A stretch of 64,000 nt of DNA, taken from Oopsacas minuta (Eukaryota > Animalia > Porifera). This document shows positions 1 to 55,118 of the stretch, piece by piece. The stretch lies in NCBI GenBank assembly GCA_024704765.1, contig JAKMXF010000088.1, positions 372,001 to 436,000 of the forward strand. The letters are read 5' to 3'. Position numbers and translations under genes: made by a program. How positions within the stretch are numbered: the stretch's first letter is position 1; every line of letters starts with the position of its first letter. Under the pieces are notes generated by a model. It ran no database searches. It was not told the origin of the DNA and saw nothing but the letters and a program-made list of their open reading frames with translations.

Positions 1-1366
1 TGTAATATTATACCTGGATATTTATACTGTAACAAAGATAGACACCTGGTTATTATTACTATCATCAGTCTACATACATAATATACCAGTAATCACATAC
101 ATCATACACTGCAGGTTGATTGTTTGATATTATTATTATTATTATTATTAAGCATTGTCAAAGGAAGTAAAGTATTTTGGACTCATATGTGATTATTGTA
201 AATTGATTACATAACGTTATAGGCGGTTTTTAAATTACCTACTTTTTTCCAGAGGAACTATCAAATGACCTGACGTCATTTGATGATTAGCCCAAAGTAA
301 ACTTGTTTCTCATCGATGATTTCGGGGAAAGTTGGGCGTTGAACGGCCTTGATTTTTCGTTATTTATTAATTGTAGGGATATTGAGTAAGCACTACTTAT
401 AAGAATATACTGTCAACTTCCGTGATAATTACTCCGATATAAGCGGGTATTTCAATAGATCCGTGTTTGATATAACAGGAGTTGACTGTAGTAGTCCACC
501 TGATAGATATTGTAATTTACATTATATTATCTCGCATTTTATCCAATTATTTGATTGTTTGTAAACGCGTATCTGCAATTATTCAGTTATAACGATAATA
601 GTACATGAAATATTTGTTTGGGGATATATGATCGGGGGCTGGCGGGGACGATAAACAAGTCAGTACACATGATCATATGAATATTGCTTATTAATAGTAT
701 TGAATCATTGATATAGCAAATTTGGAAACGCGCAAACAATTGTGCGCATTATTATCTCAATAATTTCTAAATATAGTTTGAATTAAATATGCTAAATTGT
801 ATTAAATAATATTTATAGAATTTTTTACAACGCCTTTCTCATAGATTGTCCTTCAACTCTGATTGATTATATCATCCACGCTCGTGAGGGCCCAATTCAT
901 CCGCCAGCGTAGAACGTACATGATTTGCTTCCCCTTGTGACTGTACTGGCCACTAACATATAATTACTCGGGGTTGAATTGATATACTAGATAATAACTA
1001 GCCACCCTCTCTATAAAAGAGAGTAAGGATACAAGAATACCAAAATTTTTGGGTTTTCATATCACCAAAATTTTAGAATTAGTTGAACTAGCTCGGATAA
1101 GACGTACTCCTTCGGGAAACAAAAATTAGTATCTGCACGTCTTATCCGAATATGGACTGTATTGAAATGAGCGGGAGCTTAGATTTTTGGATGTAAGAAT
1201 TTCAGTATGTAATGTCAGCCTTGTCGTTATAATCAGAGAGCTTCGCAAGTGTCCTAATTATCCACAAGTATTCAATAATAATCTTCGAATATAACTTGTA
1301 TACAAACAGATTGAAACACTGAAACAATGCACTACTTATTCGATAGTTAATAACCTGGATCATCTT

Positions 1367-1390
1367 ATTTCTTATTAACCCAATCAATTG
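1367..1390 (+). promoter_or_regulatory. PSE-like snRNA promoter motif, copy 1
   Basis: atttcttattaacccaatcaattg is conserved with 2115-2138 and 2715-2738. In copies 2 and 3 the motif ends 38 nt before the ATACT start; copy 1's start was placed using that spacing. PSE identity is inference from position. Confidence 0.45.
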
Positions 1391-1427: not shown

Positions 1428-1566
1428 AGGCATTAATCCGTCTCTTGATCATTTGACTAGTTATACTGGTCCGGAGAGAGACGGTTATCTTACCTGGCTT
1501 AGCAGTCCGTGTTCATGAACGGCTCGCTAGCATAATTTTTGATTGGAAGTTCTTTAATGAACTTCC
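1428..1566 (+). ncRNA. snRNA-like RNA copy 1: U5-like 5' domain followed by U1-like 5' arm, hairpin, Sm site and 3' stem-loop
   Basis: Stem ccgtctct/agagacgg encloses gactag-ttata-ctggtc and the U5-type TCCG..GAGAG motif. It is followed by CTTACCTGGC (1489-1498, matches the U1 5' end), a hairpin at 1497-1531, GCATAATTTTTG (U1-type Sm context, 1530-1541) and the terminal hairpin ggaagttc/gaacttcc (1545-1566). The start is inferred from PSE spacing in copies 2 and 3. Confidence 0.6.
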
Positions 1567-2114
1567 ACTTTACTATAAAATATTAAAATAGAAATTACTC
1601 GAATTATTAGATTGCCAATTCAGTTTACCCCGCTAATCCAAGATCCCACAGCCTAGTACCAATTAAAGTAAAGTTTATAGAGTAACCTCCCGTTATAATC
1701 GAAGCTCAGCGGACTGCGATAATTTCTTTGATTAACCGAGGGAATACATGTTACTTTTATTGTTTTGGGTTTCGGCACTATATTTGATCCCTCAATAAGA
1801 TAAAGATATACAAGAATAATTATACTGTAAATGTTGGTTTATAAATAGCTCTCCACTACTACTTCCCAACAGATGATTAAGCGCTCCTCTTTTTTTAAGA
1901 CATAACCTTGGGGTGCGTCTTATCCGAAGGGTTGTATTCAATAAACGGGAGCTGAAAATTTGGATGTAAAAAAATCAGTATGTAATTTCAAACTTGTTAT
2001 AGCCAGCTTCACAAGCGAAAGTGGACTAATATTCAATAAAAAATCACCAAATTTGACTTAAATACAAACAGATTGAAACAATGAATAATACACTGTAATT
2101 GATAGCTTCATCCC

Positions 2115-2138
2115 ATTTCTTATGAACCCAATTAATTG
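2115..2138 (+). promoter_or_regulatory. PSE-like snRNA promoter motif, copy 2
   Basis: atttcttatgaacccaattaattg, ending 38 nt upstream of ATACT at 2176. Confidence 0.45.
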
Positions 2139-2175
2139 AGTAGAAATGTATAATTAACTAAGATGTTTGTGTAAG

Positions 2176-2317
2176 ATACTTTACAGGCTCTCAATAGAGA
2201 GTCGGTCATTGTGAAAAAGTAATACCGTCTCTCAATATTTGACCAGTTAGTTATACAGGTCCGTAGAGAGACGGTTATCAACCAAGAGATTTACAGGAAG
2301 TTCTTTATTGAACTTCC
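2176..2317 (+). ncRNA. snRNA-like RNA copy 2: U5-like, with duplicated 5' domain and degenerate Sm site (possible pseudogene)
   Basis: Starts ATACTTT. A collapsed stem (acaggctctc-aata-gagagtcggt ... aaagt) precedes a full domain accgtctctc / gacc-agttagttataca-ggtc / cgta-gagagacggt. It has the same terminal hairpin ggaagttc/gaacttcc but only AGATTTACAG at the Sm position. Confidence 0.5.
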
Positions 2318-2714
2318 ATTTATTATAAAAAATATGAAACATAAAAACTTAAAATATTATAGATTGCTTTATCCTGTTTGGCATCTTCCTCCTCCTTTAC
2401 TTATAGGTCGATTAATTAGAAATAGCTATCCACTCCTACTTCCCAACAGAGCATTAAGCACTCTCTCCACACTCCTGGCCTAAAAAAGGAGCTGCGCTCC
2501 CAGTGAAACTCGGATAAGAAACCATTCGGAGGTACCTAATATTCGAGTAAGGATTGTATAATTTGTATTCAATAAATGGGAGCTTACATTTTGGATTTAA
2601 GAATTTCAATATGTAATTTCAGGTTTGTCGTTATAGTCAAAGAGCTCGCAAGTGCACTAATTATCCTCTGTAACAATACACCACCATACCACACGTAATT
2701 GATAGCTTCATCCC

Positions 2715-2738
2715 ATTTCTTATGAACCCAATTAATTG
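2715..2738 (+). promoter_or_regulatory. PSE-like snRNA promoter motif, copy 3
   Basis: Identical to the copy 2 motif, ending 38 nt upstream of ATACT at 2776. Confidence 0.45.
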
Positions 2739-2775
2739 AGTAGAAAAGTATATTTAACTAAGATGTTTGTGTAAG

Positions 2776-2883
2776 ATACTTTACCGTCTCTCAATATTTG
2801 ACTAGTTATACACAGGTCCGTAGAGAGACGGTTATATCTGAAAGTTAGTTTTTGCACCCTAGGAAGTTCTTAATTGAACTTCC
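2776..2883 (+). ncRNA. U5-like snRNA variant copy 3 with non-canonical loop 1
   Basis: 5' ATACT as in metazoan U5; stem Ia acttt/aaagt; 3'-side internal loop tatatctg; perfect 10-bp stem accgtctctc/gagagacggt; TCCGTAGAGAG resembles U5 UCCGUGGAGAG; stem gact/ggtc closes the loop agttatacaca; Sm-like AGTTTTTG; 3' stem-loop ggaagttc/gaacttcc. About 108 nt. Confidence 0.65.
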
Positions 2884-3383
2884 ATTTATTATAAAAATAT
2901 GAAAACAGAAAAAACAAATATTTTAGATTGCTATTAAGTAGACTCTCTAATCCGAACGGATCCCGGTAAATTGAATACAAATCGTTCGGATTAGTGAATA
3001 ACATTGAAAAGTACAAATTACAAATTTTGTAAAATTCAGTATAATGTTGTCAATATCTTTAACATATATAGTAATAACTATAGTTCAATTCGCGGTATTA
3101 TTCTCTACAATTGTTTTGTAAAATTTACGTGTACATCATTTTTCTAAGGGTTGTACGTCTAACCTTATGCCCTGGTCGTATCAGCGAGGGTCAACCTGCA
3201 CTGATTGTCTCCAGTAGCTGAATATAGCCCTATTTTACCAAGTGTTAGACGTTCTACAAAGGTGGAGTTCAATTCTCTACAATTGAGTCTTTTGAATATT
3301 TAGAATGTACTGATTAACGAGGGTCTACTGTGTAGTTTCATGAGTAAATCTCCTATTTTCCTAAGAGTTAGACAATTGATAAA

Positions 3384-3533
3384 CAGCAGAACCTCGTTAA
3401 TACGCACACGAGCGGACCTTCGAAATTTGTACTTTTATCCGGAGCAATATCAATTGAATAACCATTGTAAGGACCTGATTATGTTAATGTATTTGTTTGT
3501 ATTAACTGTGTTGGTAATAACGAGGTTCTACTG
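3384..3533. mobile_element. MITE family B (TA-type)
   Basis: TIR cagcagaacctcgtta/taacgaggttctactg; relatives at 25256-25417, about 24385-24548, and an end at about 8320-8340. Confidence 0.75.
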
Positions 3534-3787
3534 TAATATACATTGCTGTAGAAACCTCAAATTCGGGTCATAAAAGTAATTTCTCATACTGGGATCAACT
3601 GAATAAATTATACGTATAAATGTTTGCTGCGGGTATATCAGATTCAGGATCTGCTAAAAATGTAGACTATCGTATGCATTCACAGTTGACTCGCAGCTCA
3701 GTCACTAAATAAGGCACAAACTGTCTAGAATAAATTGTATCAATCTCATTACTCACATAATACCTACAAGTGATTGGGTAGCCAAAC

Positions 3788-6700
3788 TCATGCGTAATGT
3801 TTTTGAATAACACTCGCGCTTTTTGACACAGGATATCCCGCTTTATCCTGTGCTGGCATCTTCCTTCTCCTTTCCTTACTGCTCGATTTGGATACTCCAG
3901 TTTTCTCCTTTCCCTTCTCCCCAATCGTCCTCTTATACCCAGGGGTGTAAGACAGATATACCCCACTTATATCGGCGCCGTATACTTCATCATAATCAAT
4001 ATCTGGAGTAGTATCCTCACGCGCAACGTTATTACCAGCATACGCTAAATTCCGTATATGCCATTCACCTATAGATTCGTCCCAAATAGAATTATCTTCA
4101 ATCAAATGCATGGCTTGTTCTGGGACATAAAATGAGAGGATTAAATTTGTAAGGCTCAACTCGCGGTTTAATAGACCGACATTGTCTGTTAGCTCGCTCA
4201 CTTCTAGATGGTTTTCTGCCTTTAAATCGGCTAATTCTTGTTTCGCTGTAACAATCATTTTCCATAACTTTTTTAGTTTTTTAGTTTTACCATCAGCCTC
4301 TTCTTGAAGTGAAGCGTATTTCTCTTCAATATCCAACTTTTCTGCTTCAGTTTTTTCCAACTTTTTCGCGAGTTTTGCCTCTCTCTCTTTTCTTCTTTTA
4401 AGCTCTTTTGCTGATTCTTCTAATAATCGTTCTTGTTTCTCGGCTTTATCCAATAAATTTACTCCACCAACGATAACTTTTCCCTGCAAATCAGCAAGTC
4501 TTTCCTCCAAATCTTTCTGCTCCTGTTTAGCTCTCCCTAACTCTCTTTCCTTCAATTGTAACTCTTCTCTTGCAACTTGTTTCTCTTCTTCTGCCATATC
4601 TTTCTTCATTAAAAATGAATTCTTTTCACTTTCTAACTCTTTTTCAAGAGTTAGAATTGTATCACTAACTTTTCGTTTCAATCTCTTTTTCCTTTTCGGA
4701 ATATCTGGACTTTCCTGCACCTCAATTTCAGAGCTACTCCCTTCTTCAAGTTTCTTCTTTAACTTAGCTATTTCAAGTTGAAATTCCCTCAAAAGTGCGT
4801 CTTTTGGATCTTCGTTAATACGCACAATATTTTGTATCTGTTTCGCTCTATTAGCATATCTCAGTGTATTAACAGACTCTTCTATATTAAAACTAGCTGG
4901 CCCTATATTTGCTAACATAACTGTTTTAGAATTACCACCTAATGAATCTTGCAGTAGTCTGGTTAGATTCGAGTTGCGGTAAGGTATGTGTGTACTTTTA
5001 CCGTCTACAAGAGCTGATATTACATTCCCGAGGGTTGTTAGGGAGAGATTGATATTCGTAGCTTCTTTAAACTGATCTCCAGTGACACCTATAATATTAC
5101 TCTGTTTTATATTCAGCAAATATTGAAACCTGTCTCCAATAAATGAACATGTAATCAAAGACAAACAATAACAACAGACAGTGGCTTTCTATTGTACAAC
5201 AGAAAATAACTAGCACTATCCGAGTGTCGGTCTTATCAAAATATGGATTGTATTAAATGAATCGTATGTATTGATCGGGTGACGAGTGCACTTCTTATCC
5301 GAGTTCTACTGTATGGATATATCCAAAGTTATACAACTTAATACACAAATTTTCGAACTACAAAAAGTACAAATTCAGGCCTCTCCAGAATCTCGCGATT
5401 TCATATTTCACGTTTGAGAGAACCTTGCATGATGTATCTACTATCATATTTCAAGGGAGTTTTAGCATTTGTAATTTATTTCTAGCATTCTGCGATTCCG
5501 AGAGGACAGCTTATTTATACCGCGGAAGGCAGGTAAGCAAAGCTTGCTTGTAGTTATAACAAAAGCATGTATTAAAAATAATGACGTCACTAACCTGCTT
5601 TCTTTACTCTCTCTGAACCAGCTAGATCTACTAAGTGTAGTTTCCCCATTCTCACGTGTAGTTCGTTATCAGCTCCCAGGTCACTACGCTCTACTGTTAT
5701 TGTGAATATTGCGTGAGAACGAGATGACCTATAGTAGAAAACTATTCATAATTCTTCGCAATTATTAAATGAATTTGATGCAGTAGAAAACTGTTATAAG
5801 GACATCTTGAAATATGTTCTGATGATATGATAATACCAAAATATTCGAGAGTATTTTCAATTGGTATAATAATATCCTTACTGTATTAGGTGTCAAAATG
5901 TGAAAATATGCACATAAGAACAATTTCAAATGTCAGGTGCACATCTAGAGGTCACTACGAATACACATACCAAATTTGGTGTCTTATTATCTAAAGGTGT
6001 GAACAGGAGAGTGAACATGTCATAGTATAGTTGGTAGAGTAAAAATACCAGAAATATGCCATATTCCCCTGATTTAGTAATTATTTCCCTAGCCCTGGAT
6101 GGTTGGCAAGTATGAAGTTGTGATTTCACCAAAAAATTCTGACCACAAGTTTGAATTAGGAGTCCCAATCTCGAGATCTCTTGCTAATATATTAATGCAA
6201 AGAGTACAAGCTGAACGAGTATTTTCATCAGCTGCTTACCTCTGCAACATGTTTGATCGTCCGTTGGTGTTCGTATAAACAAGATTCCACTGTGTTTATT
6301 CCGCAAGCGTATTAGTAGGTTGATAGAACTTGTTATAGCAGATTTCATTGCCTTTCATAAAATTTACAAACTTATCCATAGTCCTAATATAATAGTATTT
6401 ATGTAAGAAATAAAGTAGCTTATCATTGAGATATCCATTGCAAAAAGAATTAAGAAATCGTGTCAAAAACCTTCGGATTTGTATCCAACTAATGAATTAA
6501 TTATTCGTTGAACAGGTGATAAAATAAACAGACCATTCGATCATCTTATCGAATGCTAGTAGCCCAGTTGTCGTTGTAAAAATATACGAACGAATTATCA
6601 GAAAAGATACAACAGACAAACATGAATACTCTACTAACCTCAAATTCATGTTTGTTTTAGCAAAAGCTCTATTACGATTGCCTGTGGTCATAATCTTATC

Positions 6701-7303
6701 CATATCGTCTACTGATTTAACAACACATGATAGAAGGTCTTGCACATAAACTCCAATATCTGGTCGCTCATGTATTTTTGGAATTTTATCGCCAGGGTCT
6801 TTGACGAGCAAATCACGAACCTGTTCATTATAGATCTCAAGATATGACACACGTACGAGAAACTGGTTTTCTCCTTCCGATTTTGCTATATGACCAAAAA
6901 TATGTGCGAATGAATTCGGGATAATTCCTTGCAATTCCGAATCATTTCTATCCCCCTCCATCGTGTATGTTTTCCCAGTACCGGTCTGTCCGTATGCAAA
7001 TATTGTACCATTATATCCCTCGAGAACTGAGTTTACTATTGGTCTTGCTGTATCATTGTAAATATCTAACTGTTTTGAAGTTGGTCCGAATACTGTGTCA
7101 AAGGTAAAACTTCGATTCGAGGATCGACTTTTTAAATGTTTTCCTGATATAAATATTTGTCCGTTTACTTCATCTACTTCTATAACTGATGCATAGCCGG
7201 CATTTTCTTCAATATCTGAGAGTGGTCGAGAACGAATGGATACTCTAACTTTATCAACTTCACCTTTGGTATTTTCTTCTATTTTTGATTCTACAGAACT
7301 CAT
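3788..7303 (-). CDS. KIF3A: Kinesin-2 motor subunit KIF3A (3 exons, 699 aa)
   Basis: Exons 7303-6639, 5728-5595, 5088-3788, all GT-AG and in phase. P-loop [16 protein letters not shown] and DLAGSE are present; stalk and tail ([54 protein letters not shown]) match KIF3A. Confidence 0.95.
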
Positions 7304-9002
7304 CTATGATGCCAAAATCAAACAAAAATCCAGTTTAAACAGGATATTTAAAGATATTCTTTACACGGATAATTTGCCGAATTGAATTATATTCAATGCC
7401 GATTATATCTACATGAGCAGCTTCGCTGGCTCGCGCTTGCGCGGCTTGCAAACACAGAGTGTTTGCATGTAATTCGACACTTCGTGCTTCGATGTTGCAT
7501 AAGAACTATTATTTACACATGAAAATCGGAATCAGAGTACTCGATTACCATGGTATACCCGTTGAAACAAAGTTTCTGCGAAATTTGTTTACTTTATCAT
7601 ATTCAGAAAACAACAAATGAGAAACTTGAAAATGCAGAATCAGCGTTACTATGTTACCTCGTTGTAGCCGTTGTGTTAAGTGCATGTCCCTACTTATATT
7701 TATAAAATAATTGCAATAATTATGAGAAACTTTAGGATATTAGTCATGTTTAATAATTCAATCTACAAATCATTTAATAATGGAGAAATTGTTATGATGT
7801 CCGCAATACAAATATTAGAAACACCTATAGCATTCTATTATTAAACTTACTTAGTGAATAATTATTGCTTTCATTTTCTAGGAAACTGATTTGGCAAAAG
7901 GCATAGATTTATATTTACAAAAAATAGGTGTAAACATGTGTTTTGTAATTGCACACTTCAGTGATTGATTGTATACTGTTGTGCTTTTAATGCAAGATCA
8001 GCGAGCGAGTTGTATTGCCGAATAAGAGTTCAATTAATTAACCAACAGTACAATTTATCTCCTGGATATTTATGAAAGTAAACTAGAACTGAAAGCTAAT
8101 AATTATTAAAATAAGTAAGTAACTTATAAGCATTACAAAAGAAAGGTTTATGAAAGTGTAGCTTTCCTCTTTCCAAACCTTAATTTGTACAGTAGACAAT
8201 CGGTAACTAAGAAAATGACAGATATACACTTTTTGAGTTTCTTCTGCATTTTCAATGAGAATAAATTCATTAATAGGAATTCCAGATAAAGACTAAAAAT
8301 TTCGGTTCCTTAGTGTTCGCATTAACGAGATTCTACTGTATGTATGATCGGGAAACAGCTCTGTGAACGGAGTTTTAAACTATTTTAAAACCTGGGCGAG
8401 GCCTGGATCCCTCCTATTCTAAAAGCTTTTGAAGTTTCTGACCATATACAATATCTATCATAATATACACCCAGCTGTTCATAACTCATAAGGTCATCAA
8501 ATAAGGAATTGTAAACATGTCGGAATTATCCAAATATTGACTATGGCATCTACATCTACCAGAGCAACACCAAGTATTATATGGTATTTTATTACTAATT
8601 ATGCGCAAAGTAATTTCCAATAATATGGCCAATTTCCGCCTACCAATTTGAATTTACCAACTATCACAATTAGGTTTCTAACTTAGAAATTAATATAAAT
8701 GTTTCAACAAGGAAGTCAGATAATTGAACATCCGTTCTTCACCTGGAAAGTTATGAAATCATTAAAGTTAGAAAAGTGATTCATTGAAAAGGATAATATT
8801 AATTATGTTGATTAGGTTTCCAGATAAATTTGATTATTACTCAGTTACAGACAGTAAATCTAATTAGCTGATTGTGTAATTAGATTTTGGAGGAAGGTGG
8901 AAAAGTAATTATGTCCAATGCTTTTGAATTTTCATCAACCATGATAGTGCCTCTCTCTCTCTACAGTATTACAAATTAGGAAATTGTCTGTAAATTAGAA
9001 TA

Positions 9003-16679: not shown

Positions 16680-19600
16680 TCAAAAGAAAGTCGATTCTTC
16701 ACTCCGCTGGCTTCTAGATGGAGGTTTCCTTGGATTACTTACTTTATTGAAAATAGCAATTTTATCAGAGAGACTAGTATCGTGTCCATTTATGTCATCA
16801 AATTGTGCGGCCAAGGGAGGTTGGCTTATTACCCTTGATTTAGTTGGATTACGTTGATACGGGTAGTGATTAATTTGTTGTTCACCTGCTGGAATGGAAG
16901 GGAGGGAAGGAAGCACACGAGGAGTAGGTATAGGATTAGGTATACGGGTGTCAGGCATGTGTTTGGGAGGCGGGGGCTTATACGGATATTTGTCTTGCTC
17001 CTGTATGTAAGTTGGGTTTGTAGGATTTTCAATACTTTTTTTCACATTAGTTGAATAGGTTGGGTTTGGCTGATAGGTTGGAGTATTTTGTGAGGAATAA
17101 TAAGACGAATCTCTTGGGTTAATATTATGTAGATTTGAAGGGTTTGAATTGTAAGAGAAGGCACTAGAAGGATTCGAGCTGTAGGGTGGATTAAATGAAG
17201 GAATGTTAGGGGGATTATGAGACGGAGGAGCTGGGTTGTTATATGAAGATTGGGGAATAGAATTTGAAGGTATTTTGCTTTGTGTTGAGTTAGTCTTTGG
17301 AGGTAAAACTGGAGCAAATGCTCTCGGATTATTAGTCCGGTCAGGTTCTTTGAGTTTATCCTCATCAACTGATGACAGTTGTCGTTTTGGTCCCACTTTT
17401 GTTTTTAGGACGAGTGAACTACGATGCGGGGGCCCTGATTTCTTCTGCATACCTGATTTTTTCGGACCTAACTCACCAAGCTCAATTTTAGATAATAAAT
17501 CATCCAAAAGTCCCTTTTTGTTGTTGCCATGTTCATCGGAATTTGTTAATTCTTCCTCTTCACGACGTTTCATATTTTCGCGTTTTTTCTTCGCGGCTTC
17601 TTCCACTTCTCTCTTGTGCAGTTCTTTCTTTCTAGTTTCGCGAATTAATTCATTTTCTTTACGCGCTTTTTCAAAGATGTTGATGAATTTCACAAAATAC
17701 GCAAAGAAATCTTCTGTATTTACTTTCCGTGGATCCATTGCAAACCATCTGATAGTCTCATGTAAGGAAGATTCCATATCTTTGTAGAGTTTCTTTATTG
17801 ATTTGTGTTCTTGTTCTGTCTCTTTCAAGAATTCAGGCATCACCTAGGTGCATACAGACTCAAGTAAATATGAAAATTAGAACTGATGAATGGGGGACAA
17901 TTCGTCGATCGTCGCATAGAAATAACTCTGAATGTGTAATATATTACTCTGAAACGCGTGAATATAGCATACAATTAATCTATAACACCTCATTTAGTGC
18001 TAGATCGAATTTGCAAACAGTAGTAAGACTTAAGACCGTGCAATTGTTGAAATTTGACGATAACAACAAATCTGTTGTAATGAAAATCGTTTGAAAAAGT
18101 TGAATGCAAACAGCCAGAGATTAAGATATTGATAATATCCCGTTTTTTTAGGAAGAGAATTCACTATTTTTGTGTCAATTAGAGAGACAGATAATGGAAA
18201 TCTCCAACACTTACAAACCTTATGGTAACGCTCATAAGAATCAATCTTACTCTCATCAGAGTAGTGCTTTAATTCCTGTCTAACTTCATCAATACAGTTT
18301 GACATATTCCGTATTTGAGACCTGAGATTCTCGTCATTAACTTTTGCAGCCATTCTAACTTCTTCCAATTCCAGAACAAACTTCAGTAAGTCAGGCTCCA
18401 CACCTTCAATAACTTCTACAATGAAGTTCATTAGGTTCAATGTGTGATCGTTTGTTTTAGTGCCATCTAATTTGGTTAGGGATTCTAGATGGAATCCTGC
18501 TGTCTGGGCATGTTTGGTACCTAAAACATTGTATTGTGTAAACTGATAGAAACCACAATAATCGGGGCCTGTGGAAACGAAGTGAAAAATAGAGCGATTT
18601 CCTAGTCAAATACATATTAACCTCCACAAACGGGAATTGGCAGAAACAGGGAAAGGAAGCAAAGTATTATCCAGGAGCTCTTCTAGGCGTATGATTTGAT
18701 GATATTACATTTAGGAGTATGAAATTTGAGGATCTTTCTCTTTACCATAACACAAATTTACTTACTTAGTAGGCATATGAAAATTTGAGAGAAGGAGGGC
18801 TAGGAGCGTGCTTCGAAATACTTGTATAACTCCCTATAAGGCGTTTGCATTTTTCGAGGTCCCTGACACCCAGTTTGTGGAGGTTACTGGTTACATTGTA
18901 ATGAAATAATTATGTTTAGCTAATATTTAATATCTTGGTCAATTTCTATAACTCCAGAATTAACATAAATTTAGAATATAAACATACCAGCATTCATCTT
19001 GTTACCAATCAACAGAACATATTCTATAACTTTCCTCAGTCGTTTAGAATTCTTAACCTTCTCACTAGTATCTTTAATACATCTTAGTTGAGGAACTAAT
19101 TCTTGTATTTCATTCTTGATTCTCTGTCTGAAAATCATAGTTCTGAGTCTTAATTCTAATCTGTCAATTTTAGTGACTACTAGTAAGAAGCGTTCTGATA
19201 CATTTAAGTTCTCAAAGCGATACCTAATGTGTAGTTTATGATATAAAGATCTGGCATAGTGATCTCAATTATAAGATATTATTTCGGTTGTCACAAAAGC
19301 ATAATTATATGCATGAGTTAAGCCTTTGGGAGTATATCAGCGGTCCCAAATTCGGGTCCATGGTCCAGATGTGAAAAGGTTGGGAACCGATGGATTAGGC
19401 TATTTCCTTAACCAAGGGGATTATGAAATTATTGATGAAGTGCTTCAGGAATCGTTAAAAATGCATACATATCATAAAATAGCAAGTTTGATAATGTTTT
19501 GATTAACTGAAGTTGAACTCACTTGTTTTTGAGGTCATTCAATTTCTGAATATCAATTGAGCTTGGAAGGAACTTTAGTAAATCTACCAGCATCTAAATG

Positions 19601-38275: not shown

Positions 38276-41200
38276 TTAAAGGAATGTTGATTCAGAATTA
38301 GGAGGTAATGTTTTAATACGGTCCAGCATTAGTTGCGCTTGAGTTGGCTGGTTATCTAAATGGTTGTTGTTTAAGGGTAATAGAGGACTTCCGTTGCTCA
38401 GAGTCCGCAGTGAATGATCCGGCTTGTAGTTCCTATCGTGATGATTGATAGCAGTCGTATAAGGTGTATGTGTAGGACGGAGTTGGTCCATTTGTAAGGG
38501 CTTTTTTCGTGGACGTACGAATCGTGTGTCGAAGGCTTTTCCGGTTCGTAAGGAATCGAGAAGGTTGTCGAGTACATTGTCACTTTTGTCATCTCCCATA
38601 TCATCGAGATTCACAACACCAGTACGTGAGACACGTTGTTTTGTGTTTGTTTGTTTTTTCTTCATCTCTTCCAGACGTTTTTTCGCCTTTTCTTCACGTT
38701 TTTTCTTCTCTTTCATCTCTTCATTTTGTTTCTTAGCCTTCTCAAAGCTACGTACAAAGTCTCGGATGTATCTGAACATTTCTTCCATTGAATTCTTCTG
38801 AGAATCCATAGCATACCAATCCAACAGGTGAGCTACATCCTCTTCCATTTCTTTGTGAAGTTTACGAACGTTTTGACTCTCCCCTTCTGCTGATGTCAGG
38901 AATTGCGTCATCACCTGGAAAGGAAATTATATAATTGGCGCTATATTAATAAAGCCCTGTTAATGAGGAAATTGTTTTAGTGAGTAAATATATTGTGTAG
39001 TTGAACTTCACAGAGAAAATGGTGAAATAATGACAAAATTCATGCGGCAGCTAAACTTGATGCGGGCGGTTGAGCTGAAACAAGTTCCCAACTAACACTA
39101 ATGGGTCAAACGGTAAACAGCCATTAGGTTCATTATACGATAACCTAACATATAATCAAATTGTAATTTTCTTCATAAAAATCCAATTAACCAGGTTTGT
39201 CTATTAAAAATTAAGGGAGTCATTCAAGCTAAAGAAATTCAACATGTGCTATTGTCTATGTAGATAACATATGATCGCCAGGAGGATATAACAATCACAC
39301 ACTACAAAGAGTTGTAATTCCAATTCTTTAGGAAAATATTATAGCTTGTATGTGAGATCTGAGGACATTTGATTAGAGAAAATTGGTCGTATATTGCACG
39401 AGTAGGCATAATTATGTATTAAAACTACTACGTATTATCAGGTTTGGATTCAACCTCTGAGGGGAGGGGGGGGTGAGTAATGACTTAAATTTATGGGTAG
39501 AAATATTTCAGTCGGAGGCTAGATGAAATCCTGCATCAAAGCAGCAGTTATGCGGCGAAATATTTTCACGATTTTTTTCCCTGAATAGTTAGCACATTGA
39601 TATTTGCATATTAGCAATTCTTCTAATAGCAAAATCTGCATACATATTAGCAATTTATCATGGGTCATATATTGCATTTTTGAATGGTAATAGTTCGCAC
39701 AATAGCAAACTCTACAAGTTATACAGAGTACAGAGTATAACCTCCAAAAAAGGGACAAGTGGAAGAAACAGGGGGACAGAGGAAGCAATTTTCGGCGTCC
39801 CTGACACCCGTTTAGGTGGTTACACTCTGTAATCTATAATCAAAACAAACCTCTCCGTATAGATCATTAGGATCTTTAGCGCCATGTTTATAATTCTTCA
39901 ATTCAGCTCGAATAGCTTCAATACCGATCTGTATTGCCCTTATTCTCTGTTTAAGGTCCTGATAGCTAACCCGTGAGGAACCATTAACTGATTCTAATTC
40001 ACGAGGGAATTTTAATAATTCTGGATCATGCTTTTCCAAGGTTGAGACGAGGAAATTCAGGACTGTGGTTGAGTGGTCACTCACACCCTTCGTGTCCTCT
40101 AGGCGTGTCAAAAATTCTAAACTGAACCCGTATGAACCTGCGTTATTCGTTCCTGCGTTCATAACGTTGCCCATCATAAGAATGTATTCGAGGATTTTCG
40201 CGAATTTCGGTGAATTCTTCACCTCGTTACAAGCCTTTTTGACTAGACGGAGGTCTGGCACTAAATCGACAATCTCATCTTTGAACTTTTTGCGGAATAT
40301 CATAGTTTCTAGTCTAGTCTCTAATCTGTCGATCTTTGTTATGACTAAGATAAACTGTTCAGCTTGGTTCAGTTCATTGAATCTAAAATATTCGCAATTA
40401 TACACAATAATGTACGACATAAAGTATTCGGGTAATTGCGAAATAGAATATATGGGCAATTATACAAACTCTATATGCAATAATTATGTAAATGATTGAT
40501 AGATTATACCATCAGTTAACTTACTTGTCTTTCACGCGGTTCAATGAGTCGATGAATTTCTTGCTGGGAAGATATTTCACGAGTTGTTCTAACCACTAAA
40601 GACATATATGAATAAAGCAGTATTTACACAAAGTAAAAATCAATCATTTGAAGATTCAATAATATAAGCAGATACGATGTAATTTCCGCAAATTTCCCGT
40701 TTGTGGAGGTATGTATAAATGTTTACCTGTAGGCTCAAAGATTCGTCCATAGATAATATCATTTTTTTAATAAGCTCGTGAGGATGTTTGAGTGACATGA
40801 GTAGGATTGACAGATTCTGACAGGTTTTAGGTTCTAATACCTGAGGTTCTTGTACTCGTCTACTGCCTACGAATGAACCAGTCATGCTATGAGTAGTTGT
40901 TGTTACATCTCCCTTGTCTACTGGGCGGCGACCTTCTTGTCCAAATAGTTTCTTCAGATCGGCTATAATATCTGGATTCTCAAGTCTATGAGAAGAAACA
41001 GGTATAAATATGTGTACTTGTTGCTTTATTGAGATTGTTATTTTGTTTATTTGCACTGTGTAGCTTCCACAAACGGGATGCCAGGAACGCCGAAAAGGGT
41101 TTCCATTTGTGTGGAAATAGAAATCGCTTTTTCACCACGTTTCCACAGGCTTTGTGTGAGGTTACAGAATATTTATTTGTTTGTTTCTTGATAGTTAGTT

Positions 41201-49880: not shown

Positions 49881-50255
49881 CTAATCGTCAGGGACTTCTT
49901 CATTCTCCAAGCGCTTGAAACATCTGGGATCAGTAGGCACCCAGGTTACTAGAGTATAAAGTAGATTTTTGGCGTCATCATCCTCATTTCTACGCCGAGA
50001 CAATCTCACTCTAACTCTATAAGGAACATTACGTATGCCATGTGACCAAATGAACTTATTCAAATCTGTATCGATACGGATGTCATCTGTTTTCATGTGC
50101 TTCTTAGCAAACTCTCGGATAGCTTTTATTGCTCTAGGAGCACGCCTTTTAAAACCTATACCGTGAATATATTTGTGTAGGTGTACAGTGAATTCACGGG
50201 TAACTACTTCTTTCTTCGTTGCTCTTCTCTTTACGCCTTTTGCTTTGCTATTCAT
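49881..50255 (-). CDS. RPL31: 60S ribosomal protein eL31, intronless CDS
   Basis: [64 protein letters not shown] is the eL31 signature. Confidence 0.97.
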
Positions 50256-50412
50256 CTCGCACTATTTATTCTAAGAATTGGAAATACTTGAAAGTGAATA
50301 TTATTACCGTTAATTAACGCTGTATATTTCCGTATAATAGTAGATTCAGCTAAATTGTGTGACTTTGGTTCGAAAGTATTTTGGCACAATTAAGTGAAAC
50401 TACTTTGCACTA

Positions 50413-50573
50413 CAGTGTAACCTCAATAAACACAAACGGGTCCGTGGAAATGGGGACTTCAAGAAATCAAGTGAAAAATAATAGAGTGATTTCCTAGTCC
50501 CAATAGGAATGAACCTCCACAAACTGGGAAACGGGTCGGTGTCTCTGGAGCCCTGTATGTGGAGGTTACACTG
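50413..50573. mobile_element. MITE family D between TTLL1 and RPL31
   Basis: 12-bp perfect TIR cagtgtaacctc/gaggttacactg; the internal block ttcctagtc..aatgaacctccacaa recurs near 18600, 56430-56615, 57100-57200 and 58615-58757. Confidence 0.75.
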
Positions 50574-50727
50574 TGAAAATATCTAATATACTTAGCTCGA
50601 AATTGTCATTTTAGAAAATTCACTATCGCAAAATATTTAAAGATCTATGCCCATGCGAATAAAGCAATGATATAAATACACATAAAAGTGAAAGGTTTAC
50701 CAAATCAGTCAGTAAGTATAAATACTC

Positions 50728-52315
<1,588 letters not shown>

Positions 52316-52409
52316 TTATAAATATGATACTAAACCTGGACTAGCGAGCGAATCGATATTATTATAATTATCTATTGTTGGACGAAGTATTAAAATTTTT
52401 CTGAAAATA

Positions 52410-52556
52410 CAGTAGATGACGGTTATAAGAATATACCAAATGTAATAATCACCATCCTCTGGAAAAACGGTTCCCATATATTCCTGTAGATTTTATGCCT
52501 GTTTTAAGAACATGTATTGCTACTCCCAAAGGTGTTCTTATAACCGGTATCTACTG
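52410..52556. mobile_element. MITE family G (TA TSD)
   Basis: ta-cagtagatgacggttataagaa ... ttcttataaccggtatctactg-ta; sister copies at 54732-54799 and 63060-63192. Confidence 0.85.
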
Positions 52557-52853
52557 TACCTCTATCATATTAGTTTCTACATTAGTGAGTGAAAATCGAC
52601 AGAATTGGGATCAAGAAAATTACTCAGATAAAAGTTTAGGCAATTGTCAAATATCACTTACCTCTGCAAACTACTGTATTTATTCAAATAGCTCGCTCCC
52701 ACCCGAGGGTAGCTAAAATCTAATAATCACCGCGTTTCCATGGTAAATACAGTATACATAAATCAAACAAACATATAAATGAGCCATTTCAACCCAACTC
52801 AAAAACAACCTACAAATCTCAATAGAAAAGTACAAATGCCTAAATATTAAACT

Positions 52854-55118
52854 CTAATAACTCAAATAAGAGTTAAGATAGGACATAAATGATTGTTTAT
52901 GCTTGACCATAGCTGCCATTCTCGTACTACGTCTAACTTCATTTTGTAGTAAAAGAGACTCAAAATAATTCTCAATTGATAGGAAAATTTCTTCCTTCAA
53001 TTTTATCATTCGTTCTTTCAAAACATTTTCACGTTCACCCTTTTCGTTAAGATATGTAATTAATTGCTCGATTTCTGTCTTAGTATCGTAATATATCCAT
53101 TCTCCATTCATTTCAGAAAATATTCGATATCCAATTGATGGAATATGCCAATAAGTTCGAAATTCGCGATCTTGTCCAAGTGGCTCGATTGAAAAAGTTT
53201 TCATTTTAACTTGAATTGTTTTAGCTCTTATATTCAGACGTTTGATGACTCGATCAATTTCCTCAGTTTGTAAGTAGTTGAATTTTTTACAAAGTTTATT
53301 TTCGGTCTCATCATCGTCAGCATTTCCGTTAGAAATATCGTTTCGATTATCTCCCAACAATTTTGACCTTTCTTCCCAGAGTTTTGATCGAGTATCGTGT
53401 AATTGTATTGCGAATTTATCAACATAAACTTTGAAACTATGTGACATTCCTACATGATCACATATGAACATTAGAAGTTTAGACTTCGTAGTAATATCTA
53501 ATCTTTTATAACAGGATTCATTTAACCGAGCTGTATCACTCACGAATAGCTCCAATAAAGCTGGTACTTCGAACGGGATCAGCTGATCTACATCTTTACA
53601 CTGTAATTCTCTTAACACCTGAATACAACTTCTAATATAAGATCGTATAGACGTTTCCCAATTTGTCCTGCTTACTGATTTATATCCACCGAATGAATGC
53701 CGGATTAATCCACTCAAACGACCTGTAGTATTCCGTAATAGACTTCTTATAATAGCTACAAATGTTTCAAGTAGGAGCACACATGGGGCTTCGTCTGGAA
53801 ACTCACGTTCCCATAGCAACGCTTCTTCGAAATCGCGGAATGTGAAAGGAGAAAGTTCAATGAATTCATGCATACTGTTTAAGAAATTCCAAGCGAACAA
53901 TAAGTCACCCATGCAGTTAGAAAACGCGAGATCACGTGTACCCACGGGTCGAAGGGATTCCTTAGCACGCTCCCATAACGTCAACTCTTCATCCGGTTTG
54001 GGATACTCGACTGATTCAACAATTTCTACTTGAGACAGACAATGTAAGTATCCACAGTCCATACAGCGAATAACAAGATCTACATTGTTACTATTGTCTT
54101 GTATTTCTTGGGTTATCTTAACGGGTTTTGATTCATTACAGTTATGTAATTGATTCAGAATTGGATTAAGATCGCTAATATTTACAGTGAAAGTAGTTTG
54201 GATAAATTTCTCATTTTCTTTTCGTCTAGATAATTGTTCGGGGGTTTCATTCGCGAATGCTTTAACTCTAATCCTTTTCGGAATATATTTCTCAATCAGA
54301 ATTAAGTTATGTTTCTCTGCAATCTCTTTCCTTACAATATAAGGTAAACCAGGGATTGAAACTCTCTTGTACGTATTATCACGTATAAATTGACGTAATA
54401 CATCTTTACAAAATGATAGTTTATAGCTAGAAATGAAAAGTTTTGCTCTCTTGTCGTTAGCTAGTTGATTAAAGGTATACTGGATTAATTGATCTAATTT
54501 TAATGTATTACCTTGTACAATTTCAAGGACATCTTGATGTAGGTGAGTCGGAAAATATGATACAACCTTGTCAGCTGTTGATTCTGACTCTAGAGCTTGT
54601 TCTAATGTCAATCCACTTCTGCCAGTGCGATCACATATCTTAATAAATAAATTGCAAATTATATAGAATGGACCATGGATACTATTTCAATGAGAAATTT
54701 CTAAGACAGTTTTCAAAGATTCCACTAATTACAGTGGATGCCGGTTATAAGAACATATATTGCTTCTCACAAGGGTGTTCTTATAACCGGAATCCAATGT
54801 ATAGCGATTTAACGGTAATTATTATACACTAGGATAAATTCGTAACTAATAATATATCTTAGAAGAGAACATAAAATAATAAAAATGTTCAAATTATTAA
54901 TTCTATTAATACTACTTATACTATTAATCATATTACGTCATAACAAATATTAATATACTCACCCAATTCTTATCCAGATACCAATGCAACCTAGAAATAT
55001 ACTCCTCATAAGTCTGAAGTATTTCACCAGTTACTCGCATAACAAATACCAACTGGTTGTCTTGTAGGTTGCTAGGGACGGGTAGAGGCTCCCACTGTAT
55101 GTTGTGGTGAGTAGGCAT
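52854..55118 (-). CDS. WAC-DDT-WHIM/WSD chromatin-remodelling subunit (ACF1/Itc1-like) without PHD or bromodomain (2 exons, 646 aa)
   Basis: Exons 55118-54963 and 54638-52854. WAC: VFVMRVTGEILQTYEEYISRL..W..TGRSGLTLEQALESE. DDT: GDLLFAWNFLNSM..LSPFTFRDFEEAL. WHIM1: YKRLDITTKSKLLMFICD. WSD: PLGQDREFRTYW..EQLITYLNEKGERENVLK. Confidence 0.85.

Follow-up and report, generated by a model that had tools for sequence, protein, structure and literature searches.

Three Tandem RNA Units Next to KIF3A

The DNA that we analyzed is a 64-kb stretch (hereafter, the window) from the glass sponge Oopsacas minuta (assembly GCA_024704765.1, contig JAKMXF010000088.1), the genome of which is compact and AT-rich, with a G+C content of ∼33 to 37%. 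No other contig matches the RPL31e gene of the window at every residue. Adjoining a kinesin gene that shows 100% identity to the annotated O. minuta KIF3A, the window carries a tandem array of three related units, which a first-pass annotation had described as small nuclear RNA (snRNA) variants of U5 architecture with loop 1 replaced. Our analyses confirmed the three units. The 64 kb contain exactly three instances of the long stem CCGTCTCT...AGAGACGG, where shuffled sequences gave an expectation of zero, and the 3′ hairpin GGAAGTTC..GAACTTCC likewise has three occurrences (Table 1). As described, GAGAG comes after TCCG, the apical stem is GACY/GGTC, and the loops have the three reported sequences. 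The folding of each RNA also beats that of shuffled sequence, with z scores of −4.0 to −5.8, the value for copy 1 being −5.8.

The units differ in other elements that had been ascribed to them. Sm-like sites were claimed for copies 1 and 3; the site of copy 1, AUAAUUUUUGA (1532 to 1542), is indeed strong, but that of copy 3, AGUUUUUGC (2847 to 2855), is weaker, and copy 2 has just GAUUUAC at this place. The combination of Sm site and subsequent 3′ hairpin, as in U5, is found in copy 1; in copies 2 and 3, and likewise in several paralogues from other species, the site is weak. Copy 3 does contain the ACTTT/AAAGT pairing that had been read as stem Ia of U5, together with an ATACT start, but both are absent from copies 1 and 2 and from the copies of other species and are therefore probably chance occurrences. 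The ∼40-nt insertion that is specific to copy 2 is a partial duplicate of the stem and could form a small hairpin of its own (GGCUCUCAAUAGAGAGUC).

An snRNA-type promoter block, ATTTCTTAT.AACCCAAT, on which the first-pass annotation was silent, lies ∼57 nt upstream of each unit, or ∼60 nt ahead of the hairpin. The block resembles a proximal sequence element (PSE), and when it is written as ATTTCTTAG.AACCCA.TAAGG, the distance from AACCC to the hairpin is fixed at 61 to 62 nt, as counted in copy 1 and in three of the loci from other sponges that are introduced below (L006, L007, and L009). An A-rich flank after the 3′ hairpin is common to all copies. Farther out, ∼270 nt upstream of each RNA, the units share a block of ∼100 nt that holds an Sm-like AUUUUGGAU. 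This block was not found in the other sponge loci compared; probably it either was duplicated along with the rest of the unit or serves as a distal promoter element. The array as a whole is bracketed by two inverted repeats of 13 to 15 bp, at 1093 to 1153 (TCGGATAAGACGT..ACGTCTTATCCGA) and at 2944 to 2997 (TCTCTAATCCGAACG..CGTTCGGATTAGTGA), and half-copies of the first of these recur within units 2 and 3.

Sequencing data were available as four runs of one O. minuta sample, three of DNA and one (X3) that behaves like RNA, with KIF3A exons at 2000 to 5800× and both KIF3A introns (donors GUUAGU) spliced out. In the three DNA runs, the depth of the array equals that of its single-copy flanks, while true repeats nearby reach 3 to 50× this depth. 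The array is therefore not a high-copy repeat, and the high-copy transposon that the first-pass annotation had named among the outcomes that would refute its proposal is not what lies here.

We compared the array with syntenic contigs from four other assemblies, which were retrieved via their KIF3A proteins. These provided five loci (L006, L007, L008, L009, and L052, the last from the same sample as L006), or six loci with that of O. minuta. The sponges compared are presumably other hexactinellids; relative to O. minuta, their KIF3A tails are 69 to 78% identical and their L31e proteins 75 to 84% identical. An orthologue of copy 1 is found in every species, at the same place downstream of KIF3A, and there are extra paralogues, two in L006 and L052 and one in L007. 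When the 2-kb array was compared with the other loci, nothing but the RNAs themselves matched at E < 1e-9. The flanks show no alignment, and the promoter blocks are recognizable in the cross-species alignments. The six copy-1 orthologues share a consensus fold of three hairpins, with 93.8% of cells paired and compensatory changes at 8 of 33 pairs, compared to 34 to 46% paired and 0 to 3 compensatory pairs in a slid-partner control. For hairpin 1, the alignment of 13 copies from the six loci has 97% of cells paired and contains two covarying pairs (A-U/G-C and U-A/C-G). Because the RNA and promoter are conserved without their flanks, the fold is conserved, and compensatory changes are present, the units are, on this comparative evidence, selected and structured RNA genes.

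An extra copy of the family at L007:12209-12252, on the minus strand, does not have the promoter block. It carries a different 3′ hairpin (GGAGCUC..GGGCUCC), with a partial hairpin just upstream, and may be a pseudogene.

Table 1. Positions of the RNA units, their elements, and the adjoining gene in the window
Feature	Position	Strand	Description
Copy 1 RNA	1435..1572	+	∼138 nt, predicted ends; 5′ hairpin, U1 box, hairpin 2, Sm site, 3′ hairpin
Copy 1 hairpin 1	1438..1484	+	9-bp basal stem, internal loop AUUU, bulged C, GAC/GUC helix, variable cap
Copy 1 UUAUC then U1 box CUUACCUGGC	1485..1498	+	Single-stranded
Copy 1 helix H-like stem and hairpin 2 (loop YUCAW)	1497..1531	+	Covarying pairs
Copy 1 Sm site GCAUAAUUUUUGA	1530..1542	+	Near-invariant in orthologues; aligns to Sm region of U1 model
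Copy 1 3′ hairpin	1545..1566	+	Compensatory changes in L008
Copy 2 RNA core	2225..2317	+	Hairpin 1 2225-2274, linker UUAUCAACCAAGAGAUUUACA, 3′ hairpin 2296-2317
Copy 2-specific insertion	2180..2222	+	∼40 nt, between promoter and hairpin; seen in unit alignment
Copy 3 RNA	2777..2890	+	Predicted ends; hairpin 1 2784-2831, linker with AGUUUUUGC 2847-2855, 3′ hairpin 2862-2883
Promoter block (PSE-like), copy 1	1367..1389	+	ATTTCTTATTAACCCAATCAATT; kept in all three units and in copies of other species
Promoter block, copy 2	2115..2137	+	From unit comparison
Promoter block, copy 3	2715..2737	+	From unit comparison
Shared upstream block	1159..1265, 1932-2035, 2563-2666	+	∼100 nt, ∼270 nt upstream of each RNA
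KIF3A	3791-7303	minus	Downstream of array

The Shared 5′ Hairpin and the U1-Like Motifs of Copy 1

All 13 copies carry a 5′ hairpin in which UUGAC on the 5′ strand faces GGUC-C-G on the 3′ strand; the second C of the latter is left unpaired, AUUU bulges out across from it, and in all copies a 9-bp stem lies below this helix. Within the latter stem, AUG-CAU is found in 9 of the 13 copies; the three O. minuta copies have ACG-CGU and one L006 paralogue has a U-U mismatch. The sequence directly after the hairpin is UUAUC in all copy-1 orthologues and UUAYC-like in the other copies. These features are those of the Y RNAs and the nematode stem-bulge RNAs, in which the Ro60 site is a helix of 7 bp that has a single bulged cytidine on one strand and a bulge of 3 nt on the other, the 9-bp upper stem contains RUG-CAY, and UUAUC opens the loop at its 5′ end. 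The likeness thus takes in the UUGAC(U)/GGUC-C-G helix with its single bulged C and 3- to 4-nt bulge opposite, the 9-bp second stem with AUG-CAU, the UUAUC directly after it, the variable sequence beyond, and the clustering of paralogues. At the level of sequence, the Rfam Y RNA consensus ends in GGCuGGUCCgA / ACUuGACUaGCC, compared to CUGGUCCGG / AUUUGACUAG here.

The sponge hairpin, however, is a Y-like stem with inverted connectivity. Its cap lies where Y RNAs have both of their ends, and its 5′ end and the rest of the RNA lie where Y RNAs have the loop, so that the two are related by circular permutation. Also unlike the Y and stem-bulge RNAs, the sponge RNA continues into an Sm site and a further hairpin, has no U tail by the stem, and is probably a product of RNA polymerase II. 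The Rfam Y_RNA model gave one weak match, of 15.3 bits and with the wrong partner strand, but this model is blind to a permuted stem. A pairing of the 3′ strand of the hairpin with the GGCUAG that follows the U1 box, which the Y_RNA model proposed in L007, was dropped, as it is not conserved.

Copy 1 combines this hairpin with a series of motifs known from U1 snRNA. The U1 5′ splice-site box, GGUUAUCUUACCUGGC, is single-stranded and invariant in six of six copy-1 orthologues, and the CUUACCUGGC within it equals positions 4 to 13 of the Rfam U1 consensus. The U1 recognition sequence ACUUACCUG is present in copy 1 alone of the three copies; the linker of copy 2 is without the box and its Sm site is weak. 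In the paralogues that lack the box, the Sm site is generally weak or missing. The Sm region of copy 1, GCAUAAUUUUUGA, is nearly invariant across the orthologues and is of the U1 type, matching the U1 consensus CAUAAUUUgUGgUAG. In a search with 156 nt of copy 1, U1 (RF00003) was the best of 4227 Rfam families, with an alignment to model positions 4 to 166 (16.5 bits, E of 0.019) in which one hairpin takes the place of stem-loops 1 to 3. Copy 1 and U1 therefore have in common the CUUACCUGGC box, a GCAUAAUUU.UG.UAG Sm region, and a terminal 3′ hairpin. Between its box and Sm site, copy 1 has a single stem-loop with the loop YUCAW, which we take to recall the U1-70K loop AUCAMGAAG. It differs from U1 in the 50-nt hairpin that precedes the box and in the missing stem-loops 2 and 3 and four-way junction, and the reduced U1 of trypanosomatids is the closest comparison. 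Scans with the U1-box region of metagenome and prokaryote-genome collections returned nothing, or chance matches inside bacterial genes. The cluster is apparently restricted to glass sponges.

We read the array as three paralogous snRNA-type genes, of which copy 1 would be a minimal U1-like Sm RNA with a Y-RNA-like 5′ hairpin, and we give this reading a probability of roughly one half. A number of observations weigh against it. The strands of the hairpin are joined at the end opposite to that in Y RNAs, and as the model cannot see such a permuted stem, the resemblance is a motif-level match. The U1 score of 16.5 bits is far below the gathering score of 69.5 bits, and the Rfam searches reported no U1 match for the L006 and L007 orthologues. 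In known U1 RNAs, the splice-site box is at the capped 5′ end. In copy 1, it would lie ∼55 nt inside the RNA, the start of which is predicted from promoter spacing, and the preceding hairpin covaries, indicating that it belongs to the RNA. The usual U1 body is lacking as well: the four-way junction and stem-loops 1 to 3 are missing and one small stem-loop lies between box and Sm site. In addition, the array is at background depth in X3, a type of library from which small nonpolyadenylated RNAs may be lost. Finally, the TATA-like sequence at −30 and the T5 run would equally fit transcription by RNA polymerase III. On this last point, the hairpin beyond the U-run is kept with compensatory changes in L008 and L007. 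Because this 3′ hairpin covaries and the A-rich flank is shared, transcription would pass the U-run, which argues for the U-run being the Sm site of a polymerase II snRNA-type gene and not a polymerase III stop. The evidence for copy 1 would accordingly be one of ordered, invariant motifs, and by score the RNA falls outside formal membership of the U1 family.

With the promoter block at about −57 and the A-rich flank after the 3′ hairpin, the genes look to be of the RNA polymerase II snRNA type, and the shared 5′ hairpin would be a candidate protein-binding module of the Y RNA/stem-bulge RNA kind. The predicted partners are Sm proteins and, at the hairpin, a Ro60-type protein. Copy 1, the member kept in every species, has its CUUACCUGGC box, one stem-loop, and a U1-type Sm site between two hairpins. 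Its CUUACCUGG box would most likely base-pair with 5′ splice sites (..CAG|GUAAG..), and the RNA would serve as the U1 of the sponge or as a specialized U1 variant. All that copies 2 and 3 retain is the hairpin module plus an Sm site that has decayed, so that their role would run via a partner that binds the hairpin. The confirmed or inferred introns of the window have the donors GUUAGU (5087 to 5594), GUUAGU (5727 to 6638), and GUAUAU (∼51680 to 51930). The donor consensus is loose, and these donors pair just moderately with the CUUACCUG box; hexamer counts yielded no donor consensus.

Other Readings of the Array

The same hairpin could instead mark the units as the glass-sponge counterparts of Y RNAs or stem-bulge RNAs that act solely via this element, through Ro60-type binding or a role in DNA replication. 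The region after UUAUC would then be the variable "loop domain" and the U1 box either incidental or a targeting sequence. Indeed, the Y-like stem with UUAYC is the only element common to all 13 copies, the region that follows differs between paralogues as it does in Y RNA loops, and a PSE is combined with a TATA-like box at −30. The genes also form a small paralogue cluster in conserved synteny, which is typical of vertebrate Y RNA genes. However, the stem of a Y RNA is made by the 5′ and 3′ ends of the RNA itself and carries a 3′ U tail, whereas here the stem is capped and the RNA continues, and the only Y_RNA model match is the low-scoring one with the wrong strand as partner. Further, the 3′ hairpin past the T-run covaries, the upper stem in O. 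minuta is ACG-CGU and not RUG-CAY, and the 16-nt U1 box is invariant, which is unexpected for an unconstrained loop. We consider it unlikely that the RNAs act through the hairpin alone.

Spliced-leader (SL) trans-splicing has been reported for hexactinellids, with a leader of ∼37 nt for Aphrocallistes vastus, and the first-pass annotation had offered SL RNAs with a donor at AG|GUCCGU as its alternative. In this case, the leader exon would comprise the 5′ strand of hairpin 1 together with the cap, or the first 35 to 38 nt of the RNA, beginning ..CCGUCUCU..UUUGAC.., with G|GUCCG as donor. The predicted exon length fits the A. vastus leader, G|GUCCG is found in 12 of the 13 copies and inside the first stem-loop, and the order of stem-loop, Sm site, and stem-loop behind an snRNA-type promoter is typical of such genes. 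In the neighboring KIF3A gene, moreover, an acceptor AG immediately precedes the ATG, and the mRNA bears a nongenomic leader. Specifically, KIF3A mRNA in X3 (7301 to 7310, minus strand) carries, before the ATG that follows the acceptor AG, 11 nongenomic letters, AAAAAACUUAC, possibly with a further AG. SL trans-splicing in O. minuta is thus likely to be real.

The leader of KIF3A, however, does not come from the array. Its end, AAAAAACUUAC(AG), fits no copy of the array, nor is it present in the rest of the window, and its gene lies elsewhere; when the 3′ end of this leader was searched for, neither the window nor the related loci compared yielded a candidate leader gene. In X3 (one run, assembled contigs), there were no high-depth contigs or leader-type ends at 1468, 2260, and 2817. 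The DNA depth of the array is single-copy, where SL genes usually have many copies; the 3′ third of the would-be exon is its most variable part, while the invariant blocks fall in the would-be intron; and GUCCG is far from the local donors GUUAGU and GUAUAU. Taking these points together with the lack of leader ends in X3, we regard the leader reading as unlikely, and the donor proposed by the first-pass annotation went unsupported in X3. A look-up of L31e transcripts found no contigs carrying a 5′ leader, chaetognath leaders compared with the units gave no match, and a full-text literature search for the putative leader strings returned nothing. The sponge RNAs resemble SL RNAs and the nematode SmY RNAs in being small Sm-type RNAs with stem-loops on both sides of the Sm site, snRNA-type promoters, and tandem paralogues in a host with trans-splicing. 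They differ in that leader usage was not detected, the array is single-copy, and Rfam gave no SL or SmY signal; SmY is known from nematodes only.

The U5 identity that the first-pass annotation had put forward fared worse. The 5′ stem-loop has a U5-like outline: its stem pairs pyrimidines with purines, its internal loop is asymmetric, UCCG..GAGAG lies on its 3′ strand, and an Sm site and 3′ hairpin follow. Nevertheless, no match to U5 (RF00020) was obtained at E ≤ 10 in searches with 2.8 kb, 156 nt, 125 nt, or 116 nt, and the absence of a covariance-model signal had been named beforehand as one outcome that would refute the proposal. Nor does the replaced loop 1 hold up, as the apical part is the least conserved region of the 13 copies, measuring 7 to 33 nt, unalignable, and mostly paired. 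The tips of hairpin 1 are extensions of the stem with small caps: UAU in copy 1, AUA in one L006 paralogue, UUCG in L008, and an extra stem in L009. With a tip so free to vary in length and sequence, the family offers no match to the conserved, single-stranded, U-rich loop by which U5 holds exons. Conservation that looks functional is seen in other parts: in the hairpin at its internal loop and bulge, in the U1 box, and in the Sm site. Several paralogues are without a usable Sm site. What stands of the proposed family of Sm RNAs is that these are small RNA genes of the snRNA type with, at least in copy 1, a layout of the Sm class; that they are divergent U5 snRNAs is highly improbable. More generally, the Rfam search of the window and the five related loci placed no family at its gathering score, and weak matches to a small nucleolar RNA (snoF1_F2), mir-299, IS128, and the like were set aside as chance, there being no H/ACA box layout.

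That the units are nonfunctional repeats or decaying pseudogene copies, as the insertion after the promoter of copy 2 and the promoterless L007 copy might suggest, is scarcely credible. The depth is single-copy, compensatory changes are present, and the RNA and promoter, unlike the flanks, have been conserved between species in which the KIF3A tail is only 69 to 78% identical.

Genomic Setting and Implications for Splicing

Downstream of the array, the minus strand encodes, in addition to KIF3A, a PIP5K gene, formins, Chibby, RPL31e, TTLL1, and a WAC/DDT/WSD protein. The genes for the WAC/DDT/WSD protein, TTLL1, RPL31e, and a formin (49881 to 54611, minus strand) are arranged head-to-tail with short spacers, in an order that is kept in a close relative (L001 and L005) and that looks operon-like. 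Two genes with a formin FH2 domain, at 16680 to 17843 and 38276 to 40459, apparently reflect a local duplication. Short stretches at 3220 to 3620, 5220 to 5420, 5820 to 6020, and 6220 to 6420 have a DNA-run depth 3 to 50× that of single-copy sequence, and inverted repeats lie near such stretches at 3150 to 3257 and 3314 to 3400. The high-depth stretches are probably miniature transposons, some of them within KIF3A introns.

Our literature search turned up no description of snRNAs from O. minuta or of an RNA family of this type, and the cluster constitutes a set of undescribed snRNA-type genes. A more far-reaching proposal, which we put forward with considerable doubt, is that 5′ splice-site recognition has been remodeled in these sponges, such that the working U1 would be a minimal core behind a permuted Y-RNA-like (Ro60-type) stem and the box-less tandem paralogues would be SL partners or an intermediate on a path from U1 to SL RNA. 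The box-less paralogues retain G|GU inside the hairpin, and the end of the KIF3A leader, ACUUAC(AG), contains the same hexamer as the core of the U1 box.

Few known RNAs are as strongly conserved as the spliceosomal snRNAs are in their core sequences. If our reading of copy 1 is correct, glass sponges have conserved a U1-like RNA whose 5′ domain is foreign, which would be a sign that their splicing machinery has been rebuilt. The family would then offer a concrete test case for the evolution of splice-site recognition and of spliced-leader RNAs, and it would bear on how protein-binding stems of the Y RNA type may be reused as modules in other RNAs.

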